DNA of 64,000 nt from Phaeosaccion multiseriatum (Eukaryota; Protista; Ochrophyta, other classes): NCBI GenBank assembly GCA_965112735.1, contig OZ218958.1, positions 1,426,001 through 1,490,000 of the forward strand, written 5' to 3'. Below the pieces are notes generated by a model. The model was given only the letters and a program-made list of their open reading frames with translations, was not told the DNA's origin and did not search any database. The translations under genes were made by a program, and so were the position numbers. Below are positions 9,045-15,699 of this stretch, one piece after another. Position 1 is the first letter of the stretch. Each line of letters opens with the position of its first letter.

Positions 9045-10258
9045 ATGAGTGGGTGGGCCACGGGCCGGGGTGGACAGCCATCACCATCCTCTTTCGCGGC
9101 GGTGCTGAAAAGTCTGCGCCAGGCGCCCTTCTCCCAGTGGAGCCGCGTCGCTTTGCTGCTGGACGATGCGTCTGCCGAAGCACTGCGATGGGCAGGAGGG
9201 CTCACCGCGGTCACTTGTCAGCTGGGCATTAGCACAGCCCTCAGCCTCAACGACCCCGCGGCCGCGGCAGGTGCGACGACGGGATGTACGCGTGGTTTGG
9301 TGCTTGTGAGCTCCTTCCTTTGGGATGCGGAGGCCTCCATCCTGCAAACGGCGCGGAGGATGCGGCTCAGGGAGGTGGTCGTGGGGAGCGTGCTGACGGA
9401 GCGAGCCCACTCCTGCCATCCGCAGGCGGCGGCGCTGACGGCCTCGTCGGCCACGGCGGCAGCAGCAGGAGCAGGAGCAGGAGGAGGGGGAGGAGGAGGA
9501 GGAGGAGGAAGCGATACGGCAGCCTCGTTCGCCTCCATTGCCCGCGATCTGCAAGAGTCATTGCAACGCATGCTGAGGATCGACGCGCAGAGCGACCGCA
9601 GCGGCAGCAGCAAGGGCAGAGGGCAAGGGGGAGGAGGGGGGGAGGAAGACTGGGCCGTCTCTGTCACGGTGATACACGTGCCATTGTACGTTAGTATGCT
9701 TCTCCCGCAGCCGCAGTGCCCCCTCTTTGTGATGAGCAACGTGGCCTGCTCCCGCGCCTTCCCCATCGTGCTCCCCTCTTCCTCCTCCTCCTCCTCCAGC
9801 AGCAGCAGCTCTTCTCTCCTGGAGAGCTTGCCCCAGGCGAAGCGCTTGCTCTACCGTCTCTTGGCTCACAATCTAGCCGGGGCCCTGCAGTGGCAACTCA
9901 ACCTCGACGTGCGGGGCTCGATCTTCAGCCTGGGCCCCACCTCCTCGCTCATCGCCAATACCCTCGCCTCAGAGGTCGAAGCCATCAGCAGCAGCAGCAG
10001 CAGCAGTAGCAGTAGCAGTGGCAGTGACGGAGGAGGAGGGGGTGGAGCGATCCCCGGTTTTGGAGCGGGGGCGGACCGTCTTCGGAGGCCGAAAAAAGCC
10101 AAGGCCGCCGTTGTGCTTGTGGACCGCACTCTAGACATGGCCTCGCCGTGCGGACAGCAGGGAGACACGCTCCTGGGCAGGATACTTGCGGCATTGCCTC
10201 GCACCGGAGGAATGGGCATGGACGGTGCCACAGGGACAGGGGCAGGAGGGGGCTTCTC

Positions 10259-10297
<39 letters not shown>

Positions 10298-12202
10298 CCA
10301 CCACCAGTTGGTGATCCAGAAGCAGGGGACAGTCACCATGCAGGCACATCTGCACGAGGTCGGAGTCGCGCTTCCCGGTCTGGTACCGGCACTCGCCCCC
10401 CCTGCCCATGACACGGGCCTGGTACAGCTGGAAGCCGCCAAGGCATTGGCTTCGTTCCCATGGCAGGCCCCACCCTCCATTTGCCATCCCAACGACCCTG
10501 TGGCGGCTGCGGTGTTGTACGAGATGGCAAGCAGGGCCGAGTCAGGTGGGCACGCGGCGCTCTGTGCAGAGTTGGGCAGGACCATTGACGAGTACGGCTG
10601 TGTGAGGCCCCCGGCCAAGCGGAGAGGGCTCGGCGCGGAGGTCATGGCATTACTCAAGAGCCTCTCCAAGGGGGCTGCGCGGGGAGCAGGTATGGAGCAG
10701 TAGGAGCAGAGACTGGAGGAGGAGCAGGAGGAGCAGGAGGAGGAGCAGGAGGAGGAGCAGAGCAGGAGGGGCATTGCAAGGGAGGCTTCGTCGAAGATTA
10801 GCAAGACGCTGCACTGCCAGAGGCCTATTCTTCCTCCCACTCCATCCCGCGTAGGACAGGCTCGTTGATGACGTGGCACCTACCAACTGCCCGCCCCTGT
10901 CCTCCCCCCCCCCTCCTCTCCTTCCTTCCTTCCTTCCTTCCTTCCTTCCTTCTTTGCACGCCTACAGGTTCCTCCGCCCTCTCCGCCCGAGGAGGAGATG
11001 CGATTTGCCACGAGAACATGGGCCTACTGCAGCTGGCGCTGGCCGCTATGGAAGCTTATCAGAGGACTGCGAGTCAGCTGGGCAGCCGCTGGGAGGAGCT
11101 AAGGGGTGCAGAGCGAGTTCAGAGGATGAGCCTCCGAGAGGGAGGGGCGTCGGTCTCCGAGTTGTTGCTTCAAGTCACGGAGATGCTGGCCGGGGGGCTG
11201 CCTCCCAAGGACGGCGTGCTGCTGGCACTGCACGCCTGCGCACTGAGCGGTGGGGCGAGCAGTGGGGAGGACAGTCATCGTCATCATCGTAGCCAACAGA
11301 ATGGCGACGACGATGATGACGACTTTGCCATGGCTGTGGGGCATCTGCAGGCCCAGCTCGTAGAGTCCGTCATGTCATGTGAGAGCGCTGCCCATCTCGG
11401 GCAATTGCGTTGTCTGCCTCCAGACGTGATACCCTTACTTGTCGAGAGCAACAGGGCTAGTGGCAGCAGTGGAGACGGAGGAGGAGGAGGAGGAGGAGGA
11501 GGAGGAGGAGGGGGCGGGGGCCAACAGGACGAGCACGGGCGGCGCCAACTGAGGGCTGAGGTGGAGGACCACCTCCTCAGGGGGCTGCGGATGCAGGAGG
11601 TGTTGCACTCTGCGCTCCGCTCGGATACCTTTGCAAAGCTTCAAAGAGCACCCACCACCTCATCCTCCTCCTCATCCCTGGACCAGCTGCGGCAGCAGAC
11701 TACGCTGCTGGGGAGGCTGGCTCGCCTTCTCTTCGACCCCGCTGCTGCTGCTGCTGCGGACGGATCGAGTGCGGCGTTTGTCCCAGAGCTGCGTGCCGCC
11801 GAGACGCTGAGCGTGTCCTCTGTGGGCCTTGGCTTGCTCTCCTCAGGCCTCAAGGCTCTCACCTTTGGAGGCGGTGGCATCCAGGCGAGGAGCAGGGGCG
11901 CCACGGCTGGTGTGAAAGCCAGCCAGGTGCTCGGTGGAACCGCAGCAGCAGCAGCAGCAGCAGGAGGAGGAGGAGGAGGAGGAGGAGGAGGTCGCACAGA
12001 CCCTCTCCTGAGTCCCTTGGTGCTATTCGTGGTGGGCGGCGTGACTTGTCAGGAGCTCAGGGAGGTGCGGGAGGTGGTTGCTGCGCTGGCTCCGAGTCGG
12101 CAGGTGCTTTTGGGAGGGACCACGCTCGCCTCGCCTGAGTTTGTCTTGGAGCAAGTCTTTTCGTGCGGAGAGGCTGGGGCTGGGGCTCGCCCTCAGCAGT
12201 GA
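9045..12202 (+). CDS. SCFD2: Sec1/Munc18-family protein, SCFD2/MIP3-like (exons 9045-10689, 10968-12202)
   Basis: LLLDDASAEALRWAGG, AAVVLVDRTLDMASP and C-terminal LVLFVVGGVTCQELREV...VLLGGTTLASP; a phase-1 GT-AG intron joins the two ORF-track frames. Confidence 0.8.
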
Positions 12203-12417
12203 TGCAATAAGCAGAGATGGATGGGGATGAGAATATATTACACCCTTAAGTGCCATCTATGGTTGTCTAAAGAGATGGATGGGCCCGCGACGAAGGGAAT
12301 GGGGTGACAAACAAAAAATTGTTGAAGCCCGGTTTTTCTGTGATTTGGTTTATGGTATGTCCAACACGCGTGGATGACCTTTGCCCCCACTCTCCACTTC
12401 CCTCAACCAGCACGACC

Positions 12418-14319
12418 ATGGAGCTTCGAGCCTATCAGCGTAGGGTGATCGACGCGGTCGAGTCCACCAACGCCATTGTCAAGATGCCTACGGGCTCGGG
12501 CAAGACAATCGTGGCCGCCGTCTTGATCCAACGAAAGCTCGAGTCGTCATCAGACACGCGCCGCATTCTCTTCTTGGTGCCCACGCGCGAGCTTGTGAGT
12601 CAGCAGGCGGCGGTGGTTTCAAAGTGGTGTGAGAAAGTGGAGATTGCTCAGTACTATGGAGGCCTCAGGCCCCCATCAGCTCAGCATCGTGTCATCGTCT
12701 CTACTCCCGCAGCATTTCGCATGCTCCAAGCAAACGATTCGCCAGGCTTTTCGTGGGGCACCTTCTCGCTGGTCATCTATGACGAGGTCCATCACGTGCT
12801 GAAGGACCACCCCTACCGCCATATTGCCAAAGGGCTCTTGAACTGGCACGGGCGTAGCGGTGAGTCGGAGCAGAAGGTTCAGACGCTGGGGCTGTCCGCC
12901 TCTCTCACCTACGACGTGAAAGACGCCAAGATTCGAGCCACCTTGGATCGTCTTTGCAGAGAACTGGCCATCGGCACTATGATCTCTCCATCAGTGGAAG
13001 AGCTGCAAGCGGGCGGATACGTTCCTCAGCACGGCAAGAACGTGGAGGTTCTCTCGTCCACTCGTGATGTACCGGAGGGAGTCTTGCCAGAAGAGTCGCG
13101 CTTACCGCACTTGCTGCATGCTTCGTTTATGAAACGTATCCAAAACGGTACGGCGACGGAGTTTGCTCTCGATGTCATGAAGGTGGTGGAGCTACTGGAA
13201 GGAGAAGGGACAGCCCTGGTGCCCAGCTTCCACTCCCCGCTCAGCAAGGCAAAGCTGTCCAGCTGGGAAGACGCTGCGCATAAGCTCGCAACAAGCTCAG
13301 ACCGCGCTACCAGCGCTGTTCAGCAGAGAGAGCTCTTTGCCGTGTTGGAGAGCTGGTACGTTGCCCTCCGTGTGCTGGTGCAGACTTGGGAAGAGGAGGT
13401 CCAAACTGTGTTGCAGTGGTTGAAGATGACAGAGGCCGTGACTCGGCTGCCTCCTTCACTCCAGCAACAGGCGAGTGTGCAGCGCGTCACCGCCCGCATG
13501 GAGAACGAGCACAACCTCAGCAAGCTGGGAGAGCTCCATGGACAGATTGTTGCCAAGAAGGCCCTCTACGGCGCCGATTTCCAGTGCCTTGTCTTCGTCC
13601 AGCAGCGCTTCACCGCAATGGTTCTGTCGCACTTCTTGAACGAATGCGACAGCAGCTTGCAGGCTGGCTTCGTCGCCTCACGCAACTCGAGTGTGACACC
13701 CAGCATCAAAGTCACTCCCTCCAATGTGCAAAGCACCATCAGCGCATTTCGGGCTGGAGACAGCTCGGTTCTCGTGGCCACATCGGTAGTGGAGGAAGGC
13801 TTTGACGTGCCAGAGGCCAACGTTGTCATCCTCTACGATCATATGAAGGACAGCGTGGAGCTATGCCAGCGGTTTGGCCGCGCCCGGGCCACCCATTGCT
13901 CTATTGTAGTCATGGAGGAGCGCAGCGACAGGCCGCTGTCCTTCCTCGAGACTGTGCGAGAAGGGCAAGACCGGCTGGTGCAAAGCTACAATGCGTCTGC
14001 CCTCGGAGCTGTCGATCCGGCGGTGGAGAAGAAGAAGCTAAAGGACCGTGAGCGATCGGCTTTCCGGGTGCTGGCGGACACTGTCAAGTGCCGACGCTCG
14101 CCCCTCTTGGTGCTCAACGAGTACGTCAAGAAGACGCGGGCCTTGCTGGCAGAGAGCACGGCTGTGTGCGCAACTCGTGGTGGGTGGGTTTGTCGACTGA
14201 CCTACTCCACTGCGCTTCGCGAATTGGTGGTGAGTGCATCGATGGACACAAAGAAAGCTGCAAAGCTATCTTGTTGCCAGCAACTCCTGTCGCAGCTCCG
14301 GGACCAAACTCGACCGTAG
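12418..14319 (+). CDS. Stand-alone Dicer/RIG-I-like DExH helicase with C-terminal dsRBD/DUF283-like domain; intronless, 633 aa
   Basis: ELRAYQ (Q motif), MPTGSGKT (I), FLVPTRELVSQQ (Ia), VSTP (Ib), YDEVHH..KDHPY (II), LGLSAS (III), LVFVQQRFTA (IV), VLVATSVVEEGFDVPEANVVI (V), QRFGRAR (VI); tail SPLLVLNEYVKK...WVCRLTY...TKKAAKLSCCQQLL then stop. Confidence 0.9.
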   Translation: MELRAYQRRVIDAVESTNAIVKMPTGSGKTIVAAVLIQRKLESSSDTRRILFLVPTRELVSQQAAVVSKWCEKVEIAQYYGGLRPPSAQHRVIVSTPAAFRMLQANDSPGFSWGTFSLVIYDEVHHVLKDHPYRHIAKGLLNWHGRSGESEQKVQTLGLSASLTYDVKDAKIRATLDRLCRELAIGTMISPSVEELQAGGYVPQHGKNVEVLSSTRDVPEGVLPEESRLPHLLHASFMKRIQNGTATEFALDVMKVVELLEGEGTALVPSFHSPLSKAKLSSWEDAAHKLATSSDRATSAVQQRELFAVLESWYVALRVLVQTWEEEVQTVLQWLKMTEAVTRLPPSLQQQASVQRVTARMENEHNLSKLGELHGQIVAKKALYGADFQCLVFVQQRFTAMVLSHFLNECDSSLQAGFVASRNSSVTPSIKVTPSNVQSTISAFRAGDSSVLVATSVVEEGFDVPEANVVILYDHMKDSVELCQRFGRARATHCSIVVMEERSDRPLSFLETVREGQDRLVQSYNASALGAVDPAVEKKKLKDRERSAFRVLADTVKCRRSPLLVLNEYVKKTRALLAESTAVCATRGGWVCRLTYSTALRELVVSASMDTKKAAKLSCCQQLLSQLRDQTRP

Positions 14320-14773
14320 CGGGTGGACTCCGTCGCTCTGTACAAAAAATTACATTCGTGTACATGACAGTTTTGCCGTCGGTGTAAAAAATAACCACAG
14401 GAGGAGGGGTCTTTGGGGCTCTTTTCCTTTTTTTATTTATTTAATTAATTAATTAACTTGAAAATAGCATTTCGATTGGACGGAGCCAACCCACTGTCTC
14501 CTTCCACACACACCGTCAAGCGTCAAAAATGAGTGCCCTTGGCGCGCTATCGGTACTGAGGGTGAGGCAGCCAAAGCCCACGATACACAACCGATCCCTC
14601 CTGTGGCGTAGCAGTGAGTGCTGTCACCATCTGCCCTCCATCTGCCCTCCATCTGCCATCTATATCTGTGCACTGTCGTCGTGTGCCCTTCGATGCTCAA
14701 GAGGGGTGGGGACAAGCAAGGAGAAATGACGGTATCCACTGCTCCTCCTCTCCTCCCCCTCCTCCTCCCCTTG

Positions 14774-15699
14774 TCATCGCATGCCGAGGCCGTAGGAGTT
14801 CATTGCCGAGGCGAGCTTTACGTCCTAGAGCGCACACAAAGAGGAGGGGGGGTAGGTAGGTAGGTGGACGGCCAAGCGGTAGGGACGTGGGTATGGGACG
14901 GACGCTTTGTGGATATGAAATAGAGCACTTCTTCATCAGCCTCTCGTCGTCCTCTTGTGCTCACGTTCCGTAAAAACACGTTTGTGACAGGCCAGCTAAC
15001 ACTGCTTCCACCCAAGGGTTTGTAGTCGTTACCTTCTTGGAAAGTCCTTGCACGTCATGCGTTGTGAGAGTGACATCAACTCGATTGTACACGTTCGACC
15101 ACTCCGGGTGGTGGTCCATCTGTCCATCACAAAAGCGGGGCCTCAGGACGTTAGGAAGCAAGCAAAGCACGAAGTACAATCTCTAGTTCCTTGCTCACGT
15201 ATCACACACATGCCCCCTCTGACACACACACACACACCTTTTCGGCAACCAGGGCCGTCCTACTCATGAAGGCCCACGCTTCGCTAAAGTCAACGAACTC
15301 GAACGTCTTCTTGATCGCATCCTTGTCCTCCAGCTGCAGCAGCGCCAGAGGCACACCACGGAGAAAAATGAGAGACCAGGGAGATGAAAAAAGGAAGTCA
15401 AGTTCAGCGTCTCAGCCATACCCCCGTCTCAGCCTCACCTCTTTCCACCCCGACTTGGCCAGTTCAGCGAGGGCCTGCTCCCGTTCGTCCTTATTCAACA
15501 CGTACGTAGCCAAGCCCCTTCTTCCCAACCCTGCTGCCCTCGGTCCCCCTCCCACACCAGCAGGCACGCCGACTCTCCGTTGGTTGCCGCTTCCAACACA
15601 GCTGGAAAGAAATCGAGGAATAGTAGACCCGGGAGCGATAGAGGCCAACGGACGAGGCAGCGCCCTGCACCTTCGACACACCCGCAGAAGAGACGCCAT
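14774..15699 (-). CDS. PCBD: Pterin-4-alpha-carbinolamine dehydratase with probable organellar presequence (exons 15699-15439, 15333-15238, 15119-15033, 14824-14774)
   Basis: Spliced: ...[14 protein letters not shown]|[32 protein letters not shown]|[29 protein letters not shown]|[16 protein letters not shown]; HHPEW and THD motifs; all junctions GT-AG, phase 0. Confidence 0.93.

Follow-up and report, generated by a model that had tools for sequence, protein, structure and literature searches.

A free-standing, nuclease-free Dicer/RLR-type helicase with a canonical C-terminal dsRNA-binding domain in the alga Phaeosaccion multiseriatum

The helicase of Dicer confers processivity and substrate choice in animals and plants, and in nematodes the helicases DRH-1 and DRH-3 act with DCR-1 and RNA-dependent RNA polymerase (RdRP). 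Diatom Dicer-like proteins are helicase-less, consisting of a double-stranded RNA (dsRNA)-binding domain (dsRBD) and two RNase III domains in Phaeodactylum tricornutum and of two RNase III domains only in Thalassiosira pseudonana (PMC2724275, PMC3145265). P. tricornutum possesses Dicer-like, Argonaute-like and RdRP-like genes, and gene silencing has been shown in this species (PMC2724275). In T. pseudonana, De Riso et al. (2009) described the protein Tp3_20605, in which DEADc/HELICASEc domains resembling those of Dicer-like proteins are followed by a C-terminal dsRBD; no other organism was found to have this combination, for which they proposed a role in silencing (PMC2724275). The description was repeated by Maumus et al. 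(2011) (PMC3145265), and our literature search returned no later mention of a gene of this type. In addition, Dicer-like helicases are fused to RdRPs in Dictyostelium, oomycetes, Hydra and Nematostella (Bollmann et al., 2016), and these fusions coincide with loss of the helicase from the Dicers of the same organisms (PMC4791657). Here we analyse a helicase gene in a 64,000-nucleotide stretch of DNA from the ochrophyte Phaeosaccion multiseriatum (GenBank assembly GCA_965112735.1, contig OZ218958.1, positions 1,426,001 to 1,490,000 of the forward strand), referred to below as the window. Going by the published description, Tp3_20605 has the same architecture as the product of this gene, namely DEXDc/HELICc and a single C-terminal dsRBD with nothing else, and the same Dicer-like affinity of the helicase. 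The RdRP-fused helicases, likewise compared by published description, offer a precedent, in that their Dicer-type helicase resides outside the RNase III enzyme, although they are joined to RdRP whereas the helicase in the window is joined to a dsRBD only. The architecture has therefore been known since 2009, and the window contributes one more orthologue, intact and ordinary, to the family flagged then; our additions are the breadth of this family, its status as a clade of its own and, with these, a clearer description of it.

The gene encodes an intact and conserved helicase of the Dicer and RIG-I-like receptor (RLR) type, which carries no nuclease and ends in a canonical dsRBD. In the list of open reading frames (ORFs), the frame on the plus strand is uninterrupted from 12304 to 14319 and comprises 633 codons from the ATG at 12418 (Table 1). 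Since the orthologues begin at the same M-x-L-R-x-Y-Q, position 12418 was taken as the start, and an upstream GTG start at 12304 was dropped because the N-terminal extension is not conserved. A Pfam search with the 633-residue protein returned DEAD (5.8e-23), ResIII (6.9e-21) and Helicase_C (6.8e-15), with nothing further above threshold. Conservation was assessed across 42 full-length orthologues, in which the full set of superfamily 2 (SF2) ATPase motifs, with a DExH-type motif II, is invariant or nearly so. In motif I (PTGSGKT, residues 24-30) the whole run from P24 to T30 is invariant, and in the segment DEVHH..KDHPYR (residues 122-134, DEVHHVLKDHPYR) the same holds for D122, E123, H125, H126, K129, P132, Y133 and R134. 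Further invariant positions are G158, A161 and S162 of LGLSAS (residues 158-163), F393 of VFVQQR (residues 392-397), T455, E460, G461 and D463 of ATSVVEEGFDVP (residues 454-465), and Q484, G487, R488, A489 and R490 of QRFGRAR (residues 484-490). An initial annotation of the window, which described the gene as a stand-alone 'front half of Dicer', had reported intact SF2 motifs with Dicer/RLR signatures; each motif that it quoted is indeed present and is invariant or nearly so among the orthologues.

Table 1. Features of the helicase gene and of its two neighbours, numbered from the first nucleotide of the window
Feature	Position	Strand	Basis
Complete intronless coding sequence, 633 residues and TAG	12418..14319	+	ORF list; Pfam; colinear with 42 orthologues of 600-670 residues; AlphaFold2 pLDDT 92.8
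Hel1 RecA lobe, residues 1-200: Q-type YQ, motif I PTGSGKT, motif II DEVHH then HPYR, motif III SAS	12418..13017	+	Pfam; orthologue alignment; motif comparison
All-helical insertion in the Hel2i position (between motifs III and IV), residues ~205-385	13030..13572	+	AlphaFold2 secondary structure; whole-chain matches to RLR, DRH and Dicer helicases
Hel2 RecA lobe, residues 388-500: motif IV VFVQQR, motif V TSVVEEGFD, motif VI QRFGRAR	13579..13917	+	Pfam Helicase_C 388-489; invariant columns; motif comparison
Two long helices in the pincer position, residues 507-553	13936..14076	+	AlphaFold2 helices 507-523 and 534-553; same spacing in fungal Dicers
C-terminal dsRBD, residues 562-631: alpha1 LNEYVKKTRA, three beta strands, alpha2 opening with TKKAAK	14101..14310	+	Pfam dsrm; tail profile; tail model; Foldseek
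Last exon of upstream gene, Sec1-family C-terminus, outside the helicase gene	10865..12202	+	ORF list; Pfam Sec1 1.8e-5, below cut-off
PCBD (pterin-4a-carbinolamine dehydratase) exons, convergent neighbour, outside the helicase gene	14961..15354	-	Pfam Pterin_4a in two minus-strand ORF pieces, 2.4e-6 and 3e-11

To place the helicase core, signature columns were compared between the family, fungal and mite Dicers, an RLR-like protein (P0272), archaeal Hef-like proteins and a diatom helicase (P0329). In the family, motif II is followed by HPY and motif VI contains GRAR, whereas the Hef-like rows have YAY or YSY together with GRxGR. Both HPY and GRAR occur in P0272 and GRAR in the sampled Dicers; HPYR is also present in the alignment with a resurrected ancestral Dicer helicase (AncD1D2). 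When a profile of the family was searched against the PDB, the ancestral Dicer helicase scored highest (265 bits), followed by DRH-1 (202), LGP2 (194), MDA5 and DCL1 (187 each), Dcr-2 (184), human Dicer (165), RIG-I (about 150), Hef (147) and FANCM (119). Judged from its sequence, the protein is a member of an old and widespread family of Dicer/RLR-type helicases, the 'duplex-RNA-activated ATPases'.

The AlphaFold2 model built from the 42-sequence alignment is consistent with this placement (pLDDT 92.8, pTM 0.88). An insertion between motifs III and IV had been noted from the sequence alone, and the model predicts this region to be helical (residues ~205-385), even though Pfam RIG-I_C (Hel2i) and Dicer_PBD are matched by none of the 42 family members. 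The two pincer helices form a spacer of about 70 residues ahead of the tail, equal to the spacing between Helicase_C and Dicer_dimer in fungal Dicers. In a Foldseek search of the PDB the construct comprising the helicase and DUF283 of ancestral Dicer came first (4.8e-25), followed by DRH-1, Dcr-2, LGP2/MDA5, DCL4 and RIG-I, with FANCM at rank 32. VIA-align gave its top Z-scores, of about 30 (root mean square deviation, rmsd, 5.4-5.8 Å over about 480 residues), to the dsRNA-bound, closed forms of RIG-I, MDA5 and LGP2; DRH-1 and FANCM each scored Z 29.1, the latter with an rmsd of 9.1 Å. Over the whole chain, about 470-510 residues could be aligned with RIG-I, MDA5, DRH-1 and Dicer helicases. 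On the predicted fold alone, the protein lies within the RIG-I-like helicase group, whose branches are not separable in this way. The N-terminal module of Dicer (AncD1D2, Dcr-2, DCL4) thus provides the best match in both the profile and the Foldseek searches; it shares HPYR and GRAR with the window protein, and in both Hel1, Hel2i, Hel2, pincer and a dsRBD-fold domain follow one another at the same spacing.

The tail of the protein is a dsRBD of canonical type by sequence, and the DUF283 of Dicer shares only its fold and position. Folded alone, the tail gave a model with pLDDT 91.5 and the order alpha-beta-beta-beta-alpha (H5-16, E19-27, E32-40, E45-52, H55-74), in agreement with the tail of about 70 residues that had been proposed on inspection of the sequence and which we model at residues 562-631. 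Foldseek matched the tail to DCL4, dsRBD1 and dsRBD3 of Loqs, dsRBD3 of TRBP, dsRBD5 of Staufen and a dsRBD of PACT at TM-scores of 0.7-0.87. On the Pfam dsrm model (PF00035) the tail of the window protein scores 16.5 bits, which is under the gathering score of 23, and the Nitzschia and Thalassiosira tails (P0009 and P0028) score 27.0 and 27.9 bits; 9 of the 42 members match dsrm at E<=0.01. A profile made from the 42 family tails and searched against all PDB sequences matches TRBP, Staufen, R2D2, Loquacious and PACT at E-values from 1.8e-8 to 4.5e-7, MLE at about 2e-5, RDE-4 at about 2e-4 and DHX9 at about 4e-4. The same profile reaches E 0.2 at best against the DUF283 of AncD1D2, Dicer_dimer/DUF283 (PF03368) is matched by none of the 42 members, and hhalign of the tail profile with a fungal Dicer_dimer profile gave a probability of 0.1%. 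As far as sequence goes, the initial description of the tail as 'dsRBD/DUF283-like' therefore stands in its first part, given the matches to TRBP, Staufen, R2D2 and PACT, but not in its second. Helix 2 opens with the retained KKxAK (TKKAAK in the window protein), in which K612 and A615 are at least 90% conserved, and in helix 1 N567 is conserved, as is the family-specific K572-T573-K574 (N..Y.KKTKA).

The remaining parts of Dicer were sought in the protein, in the window and in the family. Neither Ribonuclease_3 nor PAZ has a Pfam match in the protein, whose chain stops at residue 633, just past the dsRBD. When the PAZ-RNase III halves of five Dicers were compared with the whole window by tblastn, nothing was detected (best E 0.31). 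The absence of PAZ and RNase III that had been noted at the outset thus extends from the gene to the interval ahead of the PCBD gene and to the rest of the window. No RNase III or PAZ was found in the longer family members that we scanned, and the approximately 190 clusters of relatives likewise have neither. The zinc-binding C-terminal domain (CTD) of RLRs (RIG-I_C-RD, PF11648) has no match in the window protein or in the 42 orthologues, in keeping with the original view of a free-standing gene that lacks this domain. Pfam detected neither CARD nor any further signalling domain in the window protein, and ERCC4 and HhH were also absent. With two RNase III domains, platform-PAZ and DUF283 all missing from its sequence, the protein would not be classed as a Dicer (class 3 RNase III). 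In comparison with Dicer it lacks platform-PAZ, RNase III and the C-terminal dsRBD, its tail has no sequence similarity to Dicer_dimer, and it falls in a separate clade.

The position of the family was examined in a maximum-likelihood tree of 38 rows and 543 columns (LG+C20 with posterior mean site frequencies, PMSF), in which outgroup sampling was thin. The rows comprised 23 family members, four fungal DCL2s, one mite Dicer, the two halves of the tandem RLR-like P0272, four archaeal Hef-like helicases, the diatom P0329 and, as root, three shorter ResIII helicases. The fungal DCL2s, the mite Dicer and P0329 were obtained with a 1,662-residue Amoebophrya member as query; the archaeal rows were taken from genome contigs, where most of 80 loci were shorter ResIII helicases, three of which supplied the root. 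Support (ultrafast bootstrap/SH-aLRT) was 86/99 for the family, 94/94 for the Dicers, 100/100 for the RLR pair and 100/98 for P0329 with archaeal Hef. Family, Dicers and RLRs together form one side of a branch that separates them from Hef at 65/92, the backbone between the groups being weakly supported with these thin outgroups. Approximately unbiased (AU) tests of forced clades gave p 0.24 for family with Dicer, p 0.19 for family with RLR and p 0.071 for family with Hef, the last being 6.15 log-likelihood units worse. Hence an affinity of the family with Hef appears disfavoured, and grouping with Hef/FANCM, which had been named as a result that would tell against the first interpretation of the gene, is not seen in the best tree. 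We read the family as a separate, deep branch beside the Dicer and RLR helicases and not as a piece split from Dicer. Its own deep clade makes a recent gene split unlikely, and the notion of a detached 'front half of Dicer' is not borne out. Within the family the window protein falls inside a diatom subclade, where its neighbours are the metagenomic P0001, then Fragilaria, then Nitzschia with Amphora, and then Thalassiosira, an order that by itself would place the source organism within or beside the pennate diatoms; Corethron P0202 lies in a second family subclade.

Two of the proteins used for comparison deserve a brief description. P0272, from a 455-kb ENA contig, is 1,093 residues long and consists of two tandem RLR-like cores, LGP2/MDA5-like at 246 bits; one core matches Pfam RIG-I_C, both are without the CTD, and the protein, the sole outgroup that the exhaustive search described below supplied, served as RLR outgroup only. 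P0329, from a Bacillariaceae metagenome-assembled genome (MAG), has 1,468 residues, a C-terminal PHD finger after the helicase and the signatures YAY and GRxGR, and is probably a diatom translocase of the FANCM/Hef type that is distinct from the helicase-dsRBD family.

The window protein itself has no entry in the databases searched. Its closest relative, a metagenomic sequence, is 65% identical, followed by proteins of Fragilaria crotonensis (56%), Nitzschia (50%) and Thalassiosira species (42-44%); other diatom relatives come from Amphora, Mayamaea, Conticribra and Corethron. Beyond diatoms, relatives occur in a pelagophyte, in brown algae (Ectocarpus, Scytosiphon, Pylaiella, Laminaria), in dinoflagellates (Symbiodinium, Effrenium, Prorocentrum, Alexandrium), in Amoebophrya, in the foraminifer Bolivina, in the green algae Mesostigma and Cymbomonas, in MAGs labelled Prymnesium and in the chytrid Globomyces. 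An exhaustive search of 1.84 billion representatives yielded 192 clusters at E<=1e-30, stand-alone proteins of about 600-700 residues, and the best 150 of the 192 are all family members. Thus Tp3_20605, once thought unique to T. pseudonana, has counterparts in about 190 clusters over several eukaryotic supergroups, and the tie to stramenopiles with helicase-less Dicers that had been drawn initially does not hold, since brown and green algae, dinoflagellates, a foraminifer and a chytrid are also represented. Orthologues of the same architecture, whose lack would have spoken against the initial annotation, are in fact many, and numerous ones come from transcriptomes. Complete ORFs of the family are present in MMETSP, TSA and Trinity transcriptomes, so that the stand-alone product is expressed in other species. 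Copy number is usually one or two per genome. Viral homologues in IMG/VR show generic Hel1 similarity only, with no family member among them. Among the matches listed for the window protein there is none from Phaeodactylum, which, together with the statement of De Riso et al. (2009), suggests that P. tricornutum lacks the gene. Animals and land plants are not represented among the matches listed for the window protein, for a brown-algal member used as query or in the exhaustive search.

Some relatives depart from the usual layout. The brown-algal members P0122 (Scytosiphon), P0124, and P0121 and P0118 (Ectocarpus) are 1,000-1,100 residues long and have three to four repeats after the helicase that match the dsRBD tail profile of the family; in Ectocarpus at least two paralogues lie on one 3.6-Mb scaffold. 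P0217 (Amoebophrya sp. AT5.2, 1,662 residues) has an N-terminal ERCC4 domain at 414-505 and a full family helicase-dsRBD at 993-1652, and represents either two adjacent genes run together or a true fusion in this parasitic dinoflagellate relative.

Taken together, these results lead us to favour, at a probability of roughly one half, a free-standing dsRNA-activated ATPase that serves RNA silencing by way of partner proteins, much as DRH-1 and DRH-3 do. In this view dsRNA would be bound by the dsRBD together with the helicase clamp, its binding would turn on ATP hydrolysis, and the enzyme would then translocate along the duplex or remodel it. Because the protein has no nuclease, its output must pass through partners; most likely it is an accessory motor, which would feed or hold dsRNA for a helicase-less RNase III Dicer-like enzyme, an algal RdRP or both. 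The resemblance of the tail, in the profile search, to the RNA-binding dsRBDs of Dicer partner proteins is counted for a role in silencing. C. elegans DRH-1 and DRH-3 are likewise free-standing, nuclease-free helicases of the Dicer/RLR type that partner Dicer or RdRP in RNA interference (RNAi), and DRH-1 is the second-best PDB match; the DRH proteins differ in having an RLR-type zinc-binding CTD and an N-terminal domain, whereas the window protein ends in a dsRBD and starts with the helicase. Diatoms and many algae silence genes and transposons with helicase-less Dicer-like enzymes, and the helicase-dsRBD family is the obvious candidate for the missing activity. Its breadth, and its place beside Dicers and RLRs, bear on the origin of the helicases that sense dsRNA in RNAi and in the innate immune system of animals.

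Several observations weigh against this interpretation. P. tricornutum silences genes and yet is apparently without a helicase-dsRBD protein (De Riso et al., 2009, and the matches listed here), suggesting that the helicase is not generally required by diatom Dicers. Neither the window nor four orthologous loci have RNase III, Argonaute or RdRP genes as neighbours. The family alignment of the dsRBD reveals no GPxH-like His in the loop between beta1 and beta2, which is short. The family clade is deep and apart from the Dicers, so that the protein is no piece broken off a Dicer. Only four public runs contain the locus, all from one 2024 study and all of genomic DNA, as can be told from their contigs, which read through intergenic DNA and across the introns of PCBD with no joints. 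Finally, the RNAi role, the partners and a dsRNA-stimulated ATPase are deduced. A bolder version of the silencing role holds that the family is a third, ancient Dicer/RLR lineage dating from early eukaryotes, which keeps the ancestral 'helicase plus true dsRBD' module from which Dicer's helicase-DUF283 arose and supplies in trans the motor for processive dicing in lineages with helicase-less Dicers, such as diatoms; this we consider unlikely.

Of the other explanations, the one that we would entertain longest, doubtful as it is, casts the protein as an RLR- or LGP2-like sensor or regulator that is independent of RNAi, in which viral or transposon dsRNA, once detected, would trigger or modulate a response via protein partners and not via small RNAs. 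The close superposition of the model on dsRNA-bound RIG-I, MDA5 and LGP2 (Z about 30), the HPY and GRAR shared with RLR-like P0272, the AU test that tolerates a family-RLR clade (p 0.19) and a stand-alone layout with a terminal RNA-binding module, as in LGP2 or the DRH proteins, would all suit such a sensor. RIG-I, MDA5 and LGP2 thus share core fold and motif signatures with the window protein, which differs from them in lacking CARDs (or any other signalling domain) and the RIG-I_C-RD zinc domain, in its separate clade and in being non-metazoan; moreover, its terminal module is of the type seen in Dicer partner proteins, and we know of no downstream pathway in algae comparable to that of MAVS. 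Fission of a Dicer gene could instead have produced an obligate split Dicer, in which the protein would act solely as the ATPase/DUF283 subunit and would restore a canonical Dicer by joining a helicase-less RNase III in trans. The order of helicase and dsRBD fold mirrors Dicer's helicase-DUF283, with the same spacer of about 70 residues, the ancestral Dicer helicase-DUF283 construct ranks first by structure and by profile, and diatom Dicer-like proteins have no helicase. Even so, the family is monophyletic (86/99) and lies outside the sampled Dicers, grouping with Dicer is allowed but not favoured (p 0.24), the tail has no detectable sequence kinship to Dicer_dimer, the family is spread across supergroups, P. 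tricornutum seemingly manages to silence genes without the protein, and there is no synteny with RNase III genes. It is improbable, we think, that the protein is such a subunit. An independent sensor and a trans-acting Dicer ATPase were the two functions put forward in the initial annotation.

It could also be imagined that the protein is a helicase of general RNA metabolism, which would work on structured rRNA, mRNA or antisense duplexes with no role in defence or silencing. The dsRBD-helicase proteins DHX9 and MLE serve general RNA biology, and their dsRBDs are matched by the tail profile (E 2e-5 to 4e-4); the distribution is broad and ancient, usually with one or two copies per genome, and the neighbouring genes are of the housekeeping kind. 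On the other hand, the distribution is patchy (P. tricornutum apparently lacks the gene, and animals and land plants are unseen among the matches listed), a pattern more in line with an accessory or defence function than with a core one, and the nearest characterised relatives all work on dsRNA in silencing or immunity, so that a general function seems to us a rather poor prospect. Least credible of all, to the point of being very improbable, is a DNA translocase of the Hef/FANCM type or a mis-called fragment of a longer gene. Automatic names at JGI call many relatives 'ERCC4-related helicase', FANCM reaches Z 29.1 in VIA-align and Hef 147 bits, the family-Hef clade is only marginally disfavoured (p 0.071), and the Amoebophrya model P0217 joins an ERCC4 domain to a family helicase. 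Against this, the motif signatures are unlike those of Hef-like proteins, the best tree sets family, Dicer and RLR against Hef (65/92), the tail is a dsRBD with no ERCC4 or HhH, and diatoms own a separate Hef-like helicase, P0329, that groups with archaeal Hef. The ERCC4 domain of P0217 is N-terminal, 500 residues away from the helicase, and looks like the product of two merged genes. As to a mis-called fragment, the ORF is complete and colinear with full-length orthologues derived from cDNA. The preferred reading, a dsRNA-activated ATPase that works through silencing partners, is the one that we retain.

At the locus itself, the helicase gene is single-copy within the window (tblastn). A gene fragment or pseudogene was dropped as an interpretation because no part of the ORF is missing and it aligns colinearly with orthologues known from cDNA, and organelle targeting because the protein opens directly at the helicase Q-region, without a presequence. 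The TAG stop occupies 14317-14319, with an AT-rich stretch downstream near 14420-14460, and a scan of 12000-14900 against Rfam gave no match. The convergent PCBD neighbour recognized in the initial annotation is confirmed by the Pterin_4a exons on the minus strand. In Fragilaria and Mayamaea a convergent gene begins 144-148 bp past the stop. The Fragilaria, Mayamaea, Ectocarpus and pelagophyte loci have no RNase III gene within 10 kb, and the genes that neighbour family loci are ordinary housekeeping genes. Upstream, 216 bp separate the end of the Sec1-like gene (12202) from the helicase ATG. This upstream gene (9045-12202, plus strand) consists of two long ORFs with homopolymer runs of Ser, Gly, Gln and Ala, the first of which (552 residues) has no Pfam match; the assignment of its C-terminus to the Sec1 family is weak.

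Between the two genes, a segment at 12213-12283 contains about 45 bp (core 12235-12269) enclosed by perfect 13-bp direct repeats (AGAGATGGATGGG), 146 bp upstream of the helicase ATG. It occurs once in the window and has no Rfam match. In the genomic runs its k-mer depth is 80-290 times that of the flanks, and many foreign contigs end inside it. The segment looks like a dispersed high-copy mini-element, or like the footprint of a transposon with a target-site-like duplication.

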